This document shows, piece by piece, positions 9,101 through 17,230 of a DNA stretch of 64,000 nt. The notes under the pieces were generated by a model. The model saw only the letters and a list, made by a program, of their open reading frames with translations. It had not been told where the DNA came from and did no database searches. Position numbers and translations under genes: made by a program. Each line of letters begins with the position of its first letter. The stretch's first letter is position 1. This stretch comes from Dimorphilus gyrociliatus (taxonomy: Eukaryota; Animalia; Annelida), in contig CAJFCJ010000007.1 of the NCBI GenBank assembly GCA_904063045.1, forward strand, positions 3,293,404 to 3,357,403. Direction: 5' to 3'.

Positions 9101-11981
9101 TTTGGTCTCGCGGCGTTAGATAAACTACTCCATTACGGTCATTTCTTCTTCGAAATTAGAACTTTAATATCCCACTATTTCTTTCAACCGGCTATTCATC
9201 CCGTTTCTGCTGTTCCCTCATCCCGAACTCAAACATCAGCAGGTTCCTCCAGTGCAGCCACAACTATAACCGAAACAAATAGCTTCCAAAGTTCCACTAT
9301 AAATGACCAGATAGTTTCCACCCCTCAAGACATTCGCCCTATAACTGTCGGGCGATCGGATAGCCTTGAAGATGGAAATGGAACAAGTATGAATCCCCCC
9401 TTCTCTCATAATTTTATTACATATGTAATAGGATTATCTAAAAACCTTTTGTTTTATTATTTTAAGGTCAAGCCTTGCTGGGATTAAACATAACTATGTC
9501 AGAATTTGAGAGCGTGTCAACTCCAAGCCTCGTTTGTGTCGTTTGTAAATTGTTACAAAATCTTGGAGCATTACTCCCTCAGAAGGTTATTTTATCATCA
9601 TTCAAAGATGGAGTTTTTGAGTCCATTATAAAGTATGTAATTAAATAACAATCAATAATCTAATTTCTGACAATTACGCGCTTTTCCTATTGACTAACAG
9701 CCTTATTCTGGATGCTCCATCGTTATTGGAATCTTACGTAAATGATATTAAAAATATTCAAGATCCTAAACAACATTTATTAACCTTAACGGATATTTTG
9801 AAAATGCTACAAAGCATACTAGACTTTTTAAGATTATGTATGAAAAATTCTATTATATTTTGCGCAGGCCTACTAAAAGATACTGATATGCTGAAAAAAC
9901 TTACCGATTTACTAGGATTTACTTGTTTTCGTAAGTAGAATAATATCTTGTTAGATATCTAGACTAGTCAAATAAGAGATTATTTGTTAGCACTTATTAT
10001 TATGTTTGCTTTTTTTATTAGATACAAATATCATACGACGAGAGTGTGAAAAGTTGTGGCAGAGCATTTTTCTCTTTCATACAACTTTAGTACAAGGATT
10101 GGGACAAGACGCACTAATTACTCTAACGCGAGTCTTCATAAATAGATGGGACATTGTCATAGGTAGGTAAAATTAGATAATAGTTCATTGTTCTCCTTAA
10201 AATGGAACTCTAATTAAATCGTCCACCAGGTCGTTGCTTATGTATTCTTCAATTGGATGATTATAATCGGACGAGCTTGTATTACGCGACCTTGACATTT
10301 CTTAGCCAATTATTAAATGAGGAAGCTCAGCTTATTGAAAGAGATGAGAAATATTCGTTTGCTAATTTCTTAGACAAAATTGAAGGTTATTGTTTATTCA
10401 AAGGAGCTTTACGATTTTCAACTGATTTAATGAAATTTTTTCATAAGGTGATGAAAGCAAAGATTTTACTACCAATAAAAGAAATAGCGAACTAATATGC
10501 TCATATCTAATAAAATCTTATGATTTTATTAAGCTCAAATCAACATCAGAATATGCCGAAGAAAAAGGCGCTATAATAAACTGTTTAAAATCATTATTTG
10601 CTGTTAGTTCCATCGCAAGACTAAGTGCATTAGAAGGTCAGCATTCATGAATAATTTGTTTAGAAATCTGTTTATTATCTTAAATTTTTTGCTAATTAGA
10701 TGGGTTCCTCTCAACAATTATAGCACATATTAACTACTTAATTTACAAATTGCAAAGAGATCAATTCCAAAAATCCTCAAAAAAGAAGGAAAGCGTCTAC
10801 ATATTAGAGTTAATTTGGAACGCCGAACTTTTAAGAAATGCCATGTACAAAGAGCCGAAAACCAAAGTAAGCTATATATATATATATATGTATCAAATAA
10901 ACTATGACAATTTTCTAATTCTAAGGAGGTGGCCTGTGACGAAAACTTAGCTCAAATAATACACTCTTGTTGGACGTGGTGCCTAAGCGATTTATCGCTT
11001 TTACAATCTATGTTAGCCTTGTTAAGTACTTTTACAGCAAATTCCGAGAAAGGTTAAATAGGATATGTTTTATTATTTTAAACGCTATTGTAATACCTGA
11101 ATTCTAAATTTTAGCTTCAAGCTCCTTAGCATTTACCATAGCACATGGTGACAGCAAATTTATACAACAACAACACAGTAGTAATTCATTAGTTCACAAT
11201 TTAATTAAACTAACTTCTAGGTAAAGAAAAACTATTTTCTTCTTTATAATTTACTCTTTAATAGTGTTTTTACTATATTTAGAGAAACTTCGAGTGGTAA
11301 TATTGTAACCCTACGCTTGATATTTGGAATTTTAGTCAATATCTCGTTTTCACCGGAATGTAGAGGTATCATATGCAAGGTAATAAATGATATAGAGTTA
11401 ATAATTATACCCTGGTATCAATACGATATTTTTTTTCTTGTACAGAATAATTTTCTTAATGACTGGATTAAAAATTGCAATCCCCGAAAAGCAAATAAAA
11501 GTAAAACTCAGAGAGTACTTGATACATTATGGTTACAACTTATTTTATCATTATCTTTACGAGAGGAAGGCATTCAACAGTTGATTAAGATACCACAATT
11601 TATTCATCTTATCACTGATATAGCTGAGCAGTGCTCTGATTCTAAACAACGTAGTGCTTTAGTTATATTGAGAAATTTGTGTTGCCATAATGCTGTAAAA
11701 CAAATGCTGTTGGGCCAAGGTACTTTATTTTACTTTTAAAATTAATAAATTATACAGAATTTGACTTCCCCTTTTTAGATAGCGTGGTTGCTTTATTTCT
11801 GGCATGCTTGGATTCAGAAAGCCTACGGGATGTAGCTGTTTCGGCTTTGTATGCATTATGTTATAATAATCAAAAGGCCAAAACCAAATTAAAGAAAAAC
11901 GAGGTTTTAGAAAAGCTGAAAGACTTTAACGAATCACACAGAGATGCTTCCAATCTTTTGATTCTTTTAAACGCCGTCTGA
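3131..11981 (+). CDS. RTTN: Rotatin (centriole/cilia armadillo-like helical protein), about 36 exons
   Basis: Spliced N-terminus MAEKADQELDVKPLIKKLSHNIEEVRIRALQNIRSKLEYKLLCDADLVHEQQLFVALLNWFN matches the rotatin N-terminal domain. Further hallmark segments are FFTFPWLRL, DFPAEIFLQRP and GIWGAAFTLLLEHKECSLVRSQAA. About 35 short GT-AG introns were traced in frame. Stop TGA 11979-11981. Confidence 0.95.
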
Positions 11982-12430
11982 CGTACCTGAAGCGCCACCC
12001 TATATTCTCTTTTTTTTTCGCGCTCTGTAGAAAAATAGAACATTTTATTATAATTTTCGTACATTTTTAATAAATCACTTTTCAAGCATATATGACTTTG
12101 TAATTTTTGAAAAAGCAAAAAAAAAAAATATTAATTATTTTCGTAAATTAAGTGCGGAGCGCCAAGCTAACTACTTCAATATGGCGGATTGATTCCATGA
12201 TAAAAGACTTTTCTCGAATTTCTATCCCATTACGTATTCTATTCGTTTTTTTTTAGAAAAAGGTAAAAATATCTTTGAAATAAAACATTTTTTGTTAATA
12301 ATTTTGTTTATGATTTATCATTGGATACCACTTAAAGCCAAGTATCTCCGAAATTCGATCTTGTCGTCCTTTCGAGCACATAATATACTCATCTTTTGTT
12401 GTTATAATCATTTCAGATTTTGAAATCAAG

Positions 12431-15111
12431 ATGCCGAGACGTACACGGCAAACCGTTTCAAAGGCTGCAAAAGAAGAAGTTTTCGAAGAGCCACCAAAAT
12501 CTCGAAGGTACGTTATTTTCGAAAAGCCGGTGTTCCATTCCCAGGTTAAAAATCACCATATCTACCTTTTATTTATAGCAGAGGTCGCAAACGAGGACGT
12601 CCAGCTCAGAATGAAGTTACAGAAAACGAAAGTGTCAATAGACCAAGAAGAGCTGCAGCAAGAGCTGCTGAACAAGCAGCAGCAGCAGCTCAAATTGCCG
12701 AAGATGACTACGCCGCCATTGAAAAAGAGGAAGACGAAGAAATGGATATGGATGAACCGGAACAAGGAGCTGGTGATTCTAAACCCGTAAAATCAAAGAA
12801 ACCTCCTTCACCAACGAAAGCTGCGAAACGTTCTCGTAAAGCCGTTGAATATGAAAAAGACGAAGAAGAAGATGAAGATTATGCTGAAGACTTGGAAGAA
12901 GATGATGACTATGAGGTTGATGAAGATGATGATGATGATTGGAATAAACCAAAAAGAAGAAGATCAGGAGGGAAGAAAACTCCACCAAAAAGTCCTGGCA
13001 AAAAATCAGCCAAAAGTTCCAAAACTCCACCAGTACCAACTCGTCGTTCTTCCCGCACTAGTCGAAAGTCTAGGGAACCAGTTGAGGATGATGAACCAGA
13101 ATTTGAGGAAAGTCCTCGTAAGAGATCAAGCAGGAAAGCCAAGTCTGCTGCCGAAACTAAACTTGCCGAAGCTGAGGCAGACGATAGCAACGAACGTAAA
13201 ACGCCTGATGAAATGAACGATAAGCCCGAAGAAGATGCAATGGAAGAATGTCCACCTGAACCAAAAGAAGCTAAGGAGGTTAGTGAAACCGAAAAGAAAA
13301 AGACAGTTCCGATAAGCAAACCTGAAGAAAAGGTTGAGGATCAGCCAAAGGAAGCTCCTAAGGTTGAAGAGAAAGCCACTGAAAAAGAGGCTGAATTAGG
13401 CACAAAAAAGCAAGAGAAGAAAGAAGACAATATAGCAGATGACGAGGATGATGATGATGATGATGATGATGAGGGTAAAATGCAAATTGATGAGGAAAGA
13501 ACTGAGGAAAATACCGAAGAAAAACCAAAAGAGAAAATAGAAGAAAAATGTGAAAAAACGGAAGAAAAGTCTAATGATAAAATAGAGGAAAAGGTTGAAG
13601 AAAAGCTTGAGCAGAAACCTGATGAGAAACCCAAGGAAACTGCTGATAAAACCAAAGAAAAAACTGAGGAAAAGTCAGCTGAGAAACCCGATGAAAAAAC
13701 TGAGGAAAAATCAGCTGAGAAGCCTAGCGAAAAAGTTGATGATAAAACTGATGAGAAAATGGATGAAGAAACACCAAAAAATAGTGATCACGACGTTGAA
13801 GAAAAAAAGGAAGAACCTAAAGAGAAAGTTGAAGAGAAAATCATTGAAAAGCCAGAAGAGAGAGTTATTGAAAAACCTGATTCCGAATCAAAGAGCTCTA
13901 ATGTACCCGCAGCTGATGATATATCTAATAAAAATACTAAGGAAAAATCGGATGAAAAAGTGACTGATTCGTCTCCAGTAAAAGAAGCTGATGATAAAGC
14001 TGAAACCGCTACAGTTGAAAAGAAGGAGAATGGTGAAAAAAGTAATCAAAATGACAGTGAAAAAGAAATTTCACCAAAAAAACATTGCAATGGTGATGTT
14101 CAAGACCCTTTGTCGAGATCGTCAATCATTAATTCTAATGCTAAGCAAACTGATCCTAAGAACCGATTCTCTCTGGTAGTATACAATCTCTTGGCTGAAT
14201 TTCATTCTTCCCGTGGCTATCTTACGTGGACGACCCCAGAAGATCTTGATCAAGTGAATAGACATAAACTACTTGTAAAAGAACTCGATTATTTGGATGG
14301 GGACTTGCTTTGCCTTCAGGAGGTAGATGAAGCTTATTTTGCGAAGACCCTTCAACCAGAGCTAGCCAAGCAAGGTTATGAAGGTGTTTATTTCGCCAGA
14401 AAACAAAATTATACGGAAGGTTGCGCTACTTTCTATAGAAAAAGTGTGTTCAAATTGGAAAAAGAGGAAAAGGTGCATTTAGAAAAAGCAATTGTGGAGC
14501 AAGTTGAAGCGAGTGAGCAAAAGTCGAAAATTGAATCCGCTGTTACGAGTCCAGCCGTGATGATCGTCATGACTTTTCTCCATGAACCATCCGGTAATTC
14601 GATAACAATCGGAAATGTACATGTGGATTGGGCAAATTTTACAAATAAGAGTTTGATTAGTGTTCAATCAGCTTTAGCCGTCCGCAAAAGTGCCAAATCT
14701 CCGTACCATATAGTTGCTGGAGATTTTAATGCATTTCCAGATTCTCCAGCTTATCAAATTTTAACTGATGGAGCACCTAATGAAAAGAGCTCAAGTGTTC
14801 TATCAGGAATAAAGATCGAAGGTGAAAAATCACTTTTAGATCTTTGGAAAGATGGATTCAAACATTCTTCGAAAAATCTATACAGCGCTTACAAACGTGT
14901 TGCTGACAATGAACCAGAACTTACGAATTGCAACCCAGAATTATGGAAAGAAGAAAAGGGAAAGACTACAGATTATATTTGGTGTTCTCCCCTCATCGAA
15001 ACTCTAGATGTGCTTAGTGTTCCGCAAGTTAAGCAAATCGGCTGTAAGATTCCAAACAAGCAGTTTGCGTCTGATCATTTGTCTCTAAAAGCAACTCTTG
15101 CATTTCATTAA
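12431..15111 (+). CDS. CCR4/nocturnin/Angel/PDE12-family EEP hydrolase with a long AT-hook-bearing, K/E/D-rich N-terminal extension (about 869 aa)
   Basis: Exons 12431-12507 and 12579-15111; the acceptor is a NAGNAG (tag/cag at 12578/12581). EEP motifs YNLLA, LCLQEV, GNVH, GDFN, TTDYIW and ASDH are intact. A 5'-UTR intron is likely (donor about 12262, acceptor tttcag about 12417). Confidence 0.9.
13657..13728 (+). repeat. Two near-identical 36-bp tandem units encoding EKTEEKSAEKP(D/S), inside a longer EEK/EKP-rich region
   Basis: gaaaaaactgaggaaaagtcagctgagaaacccgat followed by gaaaaaactgaggaaaaatcagctgagaagcctagc. Confidence 0.85.
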
Positions 15112-15608
15112 CTTAGTCATACTTTATGTACTAAATAGATGAGTGTTTAGTTTAACAACTCTGCCATAAATAATGACTTCGAAACGAGTGATCAGTTTTC
15201 TTTTAAAAGATGAGCTCTAAATTACCTTGTGTATAACGTGATTGTCACATAAGATGTTTGTTAAGTTTCGAATTTCAGTACTTGGGTATATTTCTTATTC
15301 ACTCTATGTATATAAATATGTTACTCTTACTTGAATTCAGATTACGTGAATTGATGAGTATTTCTATCTTGATCGTTCTATATATAGTTACCAAAAAGAG
15401 TTTTAATATTTAGCCCTAGTTTTGCATACAGTCGTTCATAAATTAAAACTGACTTTTATTTTACTTCAAACATTTAATTCGGTGATTTTACCTCACGATT
15501 TCTTATCACAAGACTCTTAGAAAGGAAATTCATGCATATTAATAAGCTTGAGTTGCCTTGAAGAGGATTGGTTAAAGTAGACCGGAAACATTTCACCTAC
15601 AACAGCTG

Positions 15609-15622
15609 GCGCCATATAGTGG
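15609..15622 (-). promoter_or_regulatory. CTCF-like motif in the promoter region of the 15.9 kb membrane-protein gene
   Basis: The minus strand reads CCACTATATGGCGC, one mismatch from CCACTAGATGGCGC. An ETS-like ACCGGAAAC lies about 25 bp upstream. Confidence 0.5.
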
Positions 15623-15855
15623 AGTAATTAGCAGACAACAGCCCAAACAACGTAAAACGAGATCAGGTGTGACTCGATATAACAACTACACAATCTGGTG
15701 ATAACCGTCAATCTTATATAATTTATAGCGTCAGCTATATTGGCTGAGGATCTATGCAAGGATACTGATTATATCACGAACTTCCTTATGAGAAGATAAA
15801 AAAAACACTAAGTCGTCTTTAAACACACAAGGAGAATAAACAGACTAAATTTAGA

Positions 15856-17230
15856 ATGGGTAAGTTAAGAAATAAATTGTTTTTTTAATCTTTATCATTC
15901 CTAAGATAATGAGTTGTACTTTTTTAATTTTTAGCGGTGAGTGGAGGTACAATTGCTGGTATTATTGTTGTAGGAGTGATTGGTGTATTTGCCGTAATTG
16001 CTGTTATTTTCTTTCTAGTTAGATGGTACCTGTAAGTTTTTGATCAAACAAACACTAGATCCGAGATAACTATATAATCCACTTATTTAAACTAATAGAA
16101 ATAAAAATAAGAAAAAGAAAAAAAGTAACGATGTGGAAAAAGGAACAATGGCCAAAGAAAACAGGGCATTTGATAATATTAGTGAAAATATTCCGAAAAT
16201 TCAGAAGCCAGCTGGAGTAAAGTTATATCAACCAAGAGACGTGGTACGACATAATGGTAACTTGGAAACATTAGACGTCAGAAGGCTACCTAAAGGAAAA
16301 GGCTCCAGATCGAATTCCGATCAACCAAGAAAACTGAAATCAAGTCTCAAAACCCGAACTAAAAATGGTTATGAACCATCCGATAGTGACACATCGTGGA
16401 CGAGTGATGCTAATTCGAGCGCAGGTAGCGTTATGCTTCCAGTTCCTTCTCCTCATGACCCAGGATCAACTTGGATTACTGAAGCTGGATCCACAAATGG
16501 CTTACCTCCTAATTTGGCTCAAAAGTTTTATATGCCATCATCTAAACCTAAAAAGAGCTCATCTAAACAAAATTCATCACAATCCTCAATAGCTTCCTCT
16601 CAAAAACCTTTAGCTGCCTCTTCGCCAGTTGCGATTCGTACAATCCCCAATGTTGGAAAAGTTAATTCAAGTATTGAATCAAGTTGTACTGAAATTGAAG
16701 ATAATACCATGGGTGCTAGAAATCAAGCTTTCATTCCGGATAACCCACCAAATCGAGGTAACTACAACGATCAAATGCAAATGTATTTGAGGACAAAAAG
16801 TGATTCGGATGCTCCTTACGAGGGTCCTTCGGAAACAATCTCATCCCGCCATTCCGAGCCTCCATTTGGTCGAAATTCTCCATCACCAGATAAAGTTTGG
16901 TCAAATTTCTCTTCAGAGAGCTCTCGCAGTAAAAAAGTGTCATTTGAGATACCGGAGAAAGAAGTAAACGTAAAGAAAAAAGTCAAATTAGAAGACTTGA
17001 ATGCGGGACAACTCCAAAGAATTATTAAAAGTGCTCCTTATATCCCACATAGTCGCTCCAGACCAAAGCGTAGAAGCTTTGGAAAGGGCACAAGAAGTGG
17101 GCCTAGCCAGCCAAAGTCAAATAGTCTGCCACCACAGCATAGAATGAGTAACGAAAATTCTAATAATAATTCCGGATACTCTAATCCTGCTCATAATACT
17201 TCGAATCAGTCTGTCGAAACGGACGTTTGA
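15856..17230 (+). CDS. Orphan single-pass (type III-like) membrane protein with a long S/P/N-rich disordered cytoplasmic tail
   Basis: Exons 15856-15859, 15935-16031 and 16099-17230 join in frame: MAVSGGTIAGIIVVGVIGVFAVIAVIFFLVRWYLNKNKKKKKS (TM helix plus polybasic stop-transfer), then the 365-aa ORF. No family recognised. Confidence 0.8.

Follow-up and report, generated by a model that had tools for sequence, protein, structure and literature searches.

A CCR4-type enzyme with a long disordered N-terminal tail in Dimorphilus gyrociliatus represents an uncharacterised protostome branch

Introduction

CCR4-type enzymes of the endonuclease/exonuclease/phosphatase (EEP) fold are known mainly through five branches from vertebrates and yeast: CNOT6, PDE12, ANGEL, nocturnin and the plant homologues. 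The leucine-rich repeat (LRR) domain of the CNOT6/Ccr4 deadenylases serves CAF1 binding, PDE12 is a 2',5'-phosphodiesterase, ANGEL2 a 2',3'-cyclic phosphatase and nocturnin an NADP(H) phosphatase. Here we describe a gene of the annelid Dimorphilus gyrociliatus (positions 12431-15111, + strand) in a 64,000-nucleotide stretch of contig CAJFCJ010000007.1 (positions 3,293,404 to 3,357,403; assembly GCA_904063045.1), hereafter the window, which encodes a disordered N-terminus of about 530 amino acids (aa) followed by an EEP domain. Judged by sequence comparison and phylogeny, the gene is a fast-evolving orthologue of an uncharacterised protostome branch of CCR4-type EEP enzymes, and this branch is separate from CNOT6, ANGEL and PDE12.

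Arginine motifs of the kind found in this tail have been described in nucleosome-binding proteins. HMGN proteins are about 100 aa long and occur only in vertebrates. Cryogenic electron microscopy of HMGN, with the motif RRSAR(LSA), and of tardigrade Dsup, with (PP)RRSSR(LT), revealed binding to the H2A-H2B acidic patch via the first and fifth arginines, AlphaFold 3 models of HMGN2-nucleosome complexes proved unreliable, and further 'untapped' HMGN-like nucleosome binders have been predicted (PMC12487698). The yeast peroxidase Dot5 binds nucleosomes via RRSARIAT at aa 6-13, with R6, R7 and R10 required (PMC13347269). Disordered-region grammars that combine D/E tracts with K-blocks in E-rich regions are the hallmark of nucleolar proteins and direct them to the nucleolus (King et al. 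2024, PMC11938373).

An EEP enzyme outside CNOT6, ANGEL and PDE12

The enzymatic part of the protein is delimited by Pfam, sequence matches in PDB, AlphaFold, Foldseek and the catalytic alignment columns:

14098-15108, + strand: CCR4-type EEP catalytic domain, 337 aa

Pfam PF03372 matches with a score of 49.1 bits (cut-off 24.5; E 7.9e-13). The initial annotation of this DNA had called the catalytic residues intact, and the set is indeed complete, its eight residues (N30, E75, H175, D209, N211, D292, D326 and H327 in domain numbering) being those of the PDE12 and CCR4 reference rows. The AlphaFold model of the domain, folded alone, has a predicted local distance difference test score (pLDDT) of 94 and a predicted template-modelling score (pTM) of 0.93, and Foldseek ranks CNOT6L first for it (TM 0.80), with NOCT, ANGEL2 and PDE12 next; the domain thus has the alpha/beta sandwich of the solved members. 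The domain is apparently an active Mg-dependent phosphodiesterase, and its substrate cannot be read from the sequence. In a single-sequence search against PDB, PDE12, yeast Ccr4, nocturnin, ANGEL2 and CNOT6(L) all lie at similar distance, and a 37-sequence family profile matches PDE12 at 1.2e-60, Ccr4 at 4e-56, ANGEL2 at 3e-53, CNOT6L at 7e-53 and NOCT at 3.7e-46.

PDE12, CNOT6/Ccr4, ANGEL2 and nocturnin share the fold and catalytic core of the window protein. PDE12 (PDB 4z0v) is its best sequence match (single sequence, 1.9e-15) and has the same catalytic residues, but the window protein has neither the PF21171 N-terminal domain nor a mitochondrial-type N-terminus, and molluscs carry both PDE12 and a member of the long-tailed family (P0113 and P0053 in Sinanodonta). 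The possibility that the gene is the lineage's own diverged PDE12 was rejected on this co-occurrence and on the tree. CNOT6, CNOT6L and yeast Ccr4 come closest in structure and rank high in profile searches; by contrast, the window protein has no LRR match, and the true CNOT6 orthologue lies elsewhere in the same 77.9-Mb genome (L002, 1e-151), as do the ANGEL orthologue (L003, 4e-46, against 8e-13 for the window protein with ANGEL2) and a second LRR-EEP gene (L004). The last of these (G000:C288:31420-35127) is a divergent LRR+EEP CCR4-like gene, which in the tree has a long branch and an unusual amino-acid composition. Of the five PDB relatives, nocturnin matches least well.

A maximum-likelihood tree of 63 EEP domains, in which ANGEL is represented by the fragment from this genome and nocturnin is left out, unites all long-tailed proteins, the window protein included, in one 31-row clade (support 97/89). 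The subfamily is split from PDE12, LRR-CCR4, the plant zinc-finger CCR4 homologues and the ANGEL fragment at 100/99, and the PDE12 clade is itself separate at 100/100. Within the long-tailed clade, the window protein adjoins annelid-like rows (92/92) on a long branch. The initial annotation had set the protein apart from its characterised relatives by its N-terminus; on this tree the enzyme, too, stands outside CNOT6, ANGEL and PDE12.

A widespread family with long and short members

A word search with the EEP domain retrieved two land-snail proteins of about 1000 aa, with N-termini equally long and charged. A search with the snail domain and a profile search of 1.84 billion representatives yielded a family of proteins of 700-1260 aa (2107 aa in Octopus) with more than 60 long relatives, from gastropods, bivalves, a chiton, cephalopods, nemerteans, annelids (Owenia and Helobdella), the brachiopod Lingula, an orthonectid and spiders. 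Tail length varies from 200 to 1750 aa across the family. Short, tail-less relatives of about 370 aa are found in amphioxus, echinoderms, Lingula and bivalves, and a Babylonia protein of 365 aa falls inside the long clade. The nearest relatives of the window protein share 35-40% identity with its domain; searches of the two protein libraries returned neither the protein itself nor any relative with more than 50% identity. The branch was absent from vertebrates in every search that we ran.

Database names of the orthologues are driven by composition ('dao-5-like', 'mucin', 'neurofilament heavy', 'DNA ligase 1-like'), and literature searches on CCR4-family phylogeny and on HMGN-like motifs, none of them aimed at the family itself, returned no paper on the long-tailed proteins. 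The initial annotation saw here a candidate for an undescribed system; the gene is no isolated novelty of this genome and is part of a widespread, unnamed protostome family. Judged by sequence, the fused build and the N-terminal arginine motifs described below (an MPRxTR start, an RGR patch and R-[RSK]-S-x-R) are common to several phyla.

Two database entries need separate mention. P0064, a long-tailed member filed under the EukProt transcriptome of Siedleckia nematoides, an apicomplexan parasite of polychaetes, groups with annelids and is probably host contamination. P0255, whose 869 aa are near the length of the window protein, was considered as the window's own protein and rejected, being an unrelated protist zinc-finger CCR4 homologue.

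Tail and enzyme are encoded by one mRNA

The gene comprises three exons, two of them coding, and its product has 868 aa:

12198-12262, + strand: 5' untranslated region (UTR) exon, 5' limit at least 12198; spliced contigs of runs X1 and X10 join 12262 to 12417 (GT..AG)
12417-12507, + strand: first coding exon, ATG at 12431, encoding MPRRTRQTVSKAAKEEVFEEPPKSR and two bases of an Arg codon
12508-12581, + strand: intron of 74 nt, GT..AG, with a NAGNAG acceptor; joint 12505/12580 (cut +2) in X1 and X10 contigs
12582-15111, + strand: last coding exon, a single open frame with TAA at 15109-11; mRNA 3' end beyond 15165

Transcript evidence consists of assembled contigs from two runs. X1 is an RNA run of a coral metatranscriptome, about 1% divergent from the window, and X10 is evidently the transcriptome of the source species, because its contigs are spliced and match the window with 0 mismatches. 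Spliced contigs of both runs bear the exon junction 12507/12582, at which the split codon AG/A gives Arg and the protein reads KSR-R-GRKRGRP, so that the RGRKRGRP described initially as a product of the exon 1/2 junction is found as such; searches and alignments used exon 1 and the last exon separately, and the junction codon was taken from the DNA sequence. Upstream of the ATG at 12431 lies an in-frame stop at 12190-92, with no earlier in-frame ATG in the sequence. The last exon is an uninterrupted frame of 842 codons, covered by contigs at 12580-13432 and 13482-15165, and only a (GAT)n repeat was passed over by the aligner. A single mRNA encodes the EEP domain together with a disordered polyampholyte tail of about 530 aa, and the two had been read as one gene from the outset.

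The X1 strain variant differs from the window by 13 synonymous and 4 non-synonymous changes, 10 and 2 of which fall in the disordered part. Because this variation is mostly synonymous, in the disordered part as well, the N-terminal frame is coding, translated and constrained.

Several further observations concern the transcripts. At the NAGNAG acceptor (12570-12582, tatttatAG cAG), splicing in the RNA contigs is to the distal AG; a cut at the proximal AG would add one Ser without a change of frame. The 5' UTR exon holds an out-of-frame ATG at 12197-99, opening an upstream reading frame of about 19 codons, closed by a TAG at 12254-56 ahead of the main ATG. The X1 differences occupy 17 sites across 12762-14815, and a copy in another metatranscriptome, X2 (at 13925), is about 4% diverged with a 12-nt in-frame deletion. 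Diverged gene copies in these marine and coral metatranscriptomes indicate that the animal or close relatives occur in the samples.

Conserved arginine motifs in a poorly conserved tail

The main elements of the tail, identified by sequence, repeat and composition analysis and by motif scans, are as follows:

12583-12603, + strand: GRKRGRP, which with the junction Arg forms an AT-hook-like patch around a GRP core, in the position that the conserved RGR patch takes in the family
12640-12663, + strand: RPRRAAAR(AAEQA), a degenerate form of the family motif P-x-R-[RSK]-S-x-R-A-[SA]-[TV]-[KQ]-A at the orthologous place (compare Lottia EPTRRSSRAATQAS)
12859-12939, + strand: D/E tract DEEEDEDYAEDLEEDDDYEVDEDDDDD, after KRSRKAVEY
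12943-13077, + strand: basic K/R/S/P block, net +9 over 25 aa, holding KPKRRR (like a nuclear localisation signal), TPPK, SPGK and PTRRSSRTS
13042-13056, + strand: RRSSR, the exact three-arginine acidic-patch pattern of HMGN, Dsup and Dot5 (definition from PMC12487698 and PMC13347269)
13438-13473, + strand: (GAT)n poly-Asp tract DDEDDDDDDDDE; longest D/E run 12, z 5.6
13507-13771, + strand: K/E-rich imperfect tandem repeats in units of 36-45 nt, forming a spacer

The motifs listed in the initial annotation (RPRRAAAR, KRSRKAVEY with its acidic run, SPTK, TPPK, SPGK, SPRK and the K/E-rich spacer) were all recovered in place. The 505 aa of tail encoded by the last exon contain 21% E, 17% K and 11.5% D, with 54% charged residues and a net charge of -57. 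Negative residues cluster (neg-neg z 3.3) and charges segregate (z 4.0) more than expected; in a simple test, positive residues do not (pos-pos z 0.1). There are six S/TPx[KR] sites (SPTK, TPPK, SPGK, SPRK, SPVK and SPKK) against about one expected from composition. A Pfam scan of the last-exon product gave no AT_hook, linker-histone or HMG14_17 match, a scan of the N-termini of 28 orthologues, with E allowed up to 10, gave no chromatin domain, just weak composition-driven matches, and an ESM Atlas feature search with the 505-aa tail gave no usable match.

Overall, the tail is poorly conserved (mean column identity of 26% in alignment A2). Arginine motifs near the N-terminus recur across the family, so that basic motifs are conserved in orthologues. 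The start MPR is present in 37 of 60 long members and MP[RK]x0-2[TSK][RK] in 32, and RGR occurs within the first 120 aa of 45 of 60 relatives, against a mean of 6.6 in local shuffles. The exon-1 peptide and the start of the last exon are colinear with the N-termini of heterobranch gastropods (z 3-5 against shuffles; z 3-4 for the exon-1 peptide with gastropod orthologues): MPRRTRQTVSKAAKEE pairs with MPRVTRRSLAAKEE, and KSR/RGRKRGRP pairs with Aplysia KSGRGRRG. Given this colinear alignment, the 'AT-hook' RGRKRGRP is, as a matter of sequence homology, the local form of the conserved RGR patch. Its GRP core is lineage-specific. Orthologues do not keep the AT-hook: about 9 of 60 relatives contain RGRP, none of them at the position of the window protein, where the relatives have RGR(R/S/G), and GRP appears in the first 120 aa of a single one of the 60, fewer than in shuffles (mean 5.4).

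Of 68 long members, 36 carry a second motif, R-[RSK]-[ST]-x-R-[ATGLS], at aa 13-48. These come from molluscs, annelid-like sequences and arachnids, and the motif has an extended consensus of about E-S-P-x-T-R-R-S-S-R-A-S-T-K-A-S. In relaxed form (RRSxR-type), it is found within the first 80 aa of 27 of 60 relatives, against 2.7 in local shuffles, and strict RRSxR in 14 of 60; the density of R[RK][ST]xR is 24-fold higher in the first 80 aa than in the remaining tail. The copy at the orthologous place in the window protein is degenerate (ESVNRPRRAAARAAEQA, against Lottia SPEPTRRSSRAATQAS), and the exact RRSSR lies further on, in the context PTRRSSRTS (13039-13065) within the K/P/S-rich basic block.

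Seven arachnid-type members (P0177, P0198, P0189, P0201, P0210, P0226 and P0254) carry substitutions of catalytic residues (E75 to Q, H175 to Q/S/F and D209 to E/S/T). These proteins keep the long N-terminus with a PRRSGR/RRSTR/RRSAR motif and are probably pseudo-enzymes that retain the function of the tail. That arachnid copies lose the catalytic Glu, His and Asp yet keep both tail and RRSxR suggests a separate function for the tail.

A possible tether to chromatin or the nucleolus

In the explanation that we favour, and regard as evenly poised between right and wrong, the protein would be a CCR4-type enzyme of the nucleus that conserved arginine motifs on a long polyampholyte linker tether to chromatin, to nucleoli or to both. 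Under this reading the window protein would be nuclear, and its N-terminus would act as a multivalent tether, probably regulated by phosphorylation. RRSSR-type motifs would dock on the H2A-H2B acidic patch in the manner of HMGN, Dsup and Dot5, contacts with nucleic acid would come from the RGR/GRP patch and the K-blocks, and the long acidic K/E spacer would give the EEP domain reach to the 3' ends of nearby RNA, which it would trim or from which it would take off terminal phosphates. The N-terminal arginine motifs resemble nucleosome-binding motifs more closely than AT-hooks, and tethering of this kind is plausible at the level of motif resemblance. The R-R-S-x-R of the family has the three arginines needed for acidic-patch binding in HMGN, Dsup and Dot5 and, as in Dot5, stands near the N-terminus of an enzyme; these proteins nevertheless show no profile-level homology to the family. 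The chromatin tether proposed initially thus lost its AT-hook/HMGA form and survives as the R-R/S/K-S-x-R acidic-patch pattern, a resemblance of sequence.

Several points weigh against this reading. The copy at the orthologous place in the window protein, RRAAAR, has no Ser and one extra residue, and the exact RRSSR lies about 180 aa into the protein, in a locally R/S-rich block where it would arise by chance with a probability of about 0.05 (a composition estimate). Heterobranch snails have no Arg at the fifth position. RRSxR is also the pattern of a basophilic-kinase site. Pfam HMG14_17 and AT_hook match neither the window protein nor the 28 orthologue N-termini, and the tree holds no nocturnin row. 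The net charge of the tail is negative, and a nucleolar grammar suits its D/E tracts and K/E pattern equally well (PMC11938373).

In its most specific form, which we offer tentatively and consider rather doubtful, the proposal would describe an ancient protostome family of RNA-end enzymes, anchored on the nucleosome acidic patch by HMGN/Dsup-type R-R-S-x-R, released by phosphorylation of the motif Ser and of the S/TPxK sites and acting on nascent or chromatin-associated RNA ends, with the arachnid form as a catalytically dead chromatin protein. If true, the family would count among the 'untapped' HMGN-like binders of PMC12487698 and be the first of these that is an RNA-end processing enzyme.

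Alternative readings of the tail

It is possible, if somewhat unlikely, that the enzyme is nucleolar, the disordered tail partitioning the EEP domain into nucleoli for 3' trimming of pre-rRNA or snoRNA and the arginine motifs serving as nuclear or nucleolar localisation signals instead of nucleosome anchors. D/E tracts and a K/E-rich polyampholyte spacer liken the window protein to nucleolin/NUCKS/Nopp140-type regions, and such a grammar is present in its tail (PMC11938373), including the D/E run of 12 (z 5.6), the patterning of negative residues (z 3.3), the charge segregation (z 4.0) and the E and K content of the spacer (21% and 17%). Unlike those regions, however, the tail is attached to an EEP enzyme, and its K-block patterning is not significant in a simple test (z 0.1), so that it shows no clear K-blocks in the published sense. 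Automatic NCBI names of orthologues such as 'nucleolar protein dao-5-like' and 'nucleolar and coiled-body phosphoprotein 1-like' point the same way but are driven by composition and are no evidence. The positional conservation of the RxSxR motif is left unexplained by a nucleolar role, which is, moreover, partly compatible with the tether rather than exclusive of it.

We consider it unlikely that the protein is a soluble deadenylase or phosphatase of the ordinary kind with no specific tether, its tail being a fast-evolving low-complexity appendage with classical nuclear localisation signal patches and its motifs reflecting R/S/K composition and kinase sites. Tail-less short relatives do exist, even within the long clade (Babylonia), tails range from 200 to 1750 aa with poorly conserved sequence, no chromatin-domain profile matches them and the Atlas search was empty. 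However, the motifs are strongly position-specific, several-fold above local-composition shuffles, the tail has been retained since before the split of spiralians and arachnids, it is kept in arachnid copies without catalytic residues, and its variation is mostly synonymous.

Minor-groove binding of AT-rich DNA by an HMGA/H1-like module, through the RGRKRGRP AT-hook and H1-like S/TPxK repeats, appears very improbable. The R-G-R-P core with preceding basic residues, the clustered S/TPxK sites (6 S/TPx[KR] in all), the recurrence of RGRP in about 9 of 60 relatives and an AT-rich genome (about 33% GC) are consistent with it. By contrast, the hook is single and unconserved, with AQ and no basic residues after the Pro, GRP is rarer in the first 120 aa of the relatives than in shuffles (1/60, shuffle mean 5.4), neither the PF00538 winged-helix globular domain of linker histones nor PF02178 (AT_hook) is present, and the tail is net acidic. 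On these grounds, the 'HMGA/H1-like' label of the initial annotation was abandoned: the protein has one GRP core, no H1, HMG or AT_hook match in Pfam and a tail of net charge -57, and with histone H1 it has just the S/TPxK sites in common.

It is extremely improbable that an artefact of the gene model joins two products, one the N-terminal region and the other the EEP domain: no single contig bridges 13433-13481, where the aligner skipped the repeat, and contig continuity alone is weak evidence because X10 contigs also merge neighbouring genes, but the 842-codon frame runs uninterrupted across the gap, the fused architecture and the MPR start are shared by orthologues in many phyla, and variation is synonymous-biased on both sides.

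Neighbouring genes

X10 contigs run unbroken from the upstream gene on the same strand (stop at 11979-81) into the 5' UTR exon (11777-12262) and continue from the 3' UTR into the next gene (15111-15936; ATG at 15856, splice from 15859 to 15936). The X10 assembly thus joins three neighbouring genes of this very compact genome, through read-through or through UTRs that overlap. Fusion of the upstream gene to the gene at 12431-15111 was rejected, the upstream frame ending at 11979-81 and an in-frame stop lying at 12190-92. The downstream gene has a small transmembrane-like first coding exon (15936-16032), followed by a Ser/Pro/Asn-rich open frame of 365 aa (16133-17230).

Significance

Should the tether prove false, the gene would encode an ordinary enzyme with a low-complexity tail. 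If it is true, the family would offer a testable RNA-end enzyme on nucleosomes and extend the HMGN-like motif beyond vertebrates and tardigrades. On its placement in a tree with PDE12, CCR4, ANGEL and plant rows, the gene appears to mark a sixth animal branch of CCR4-type enzymes, with short and long-tailed forms, that has never been characterised.

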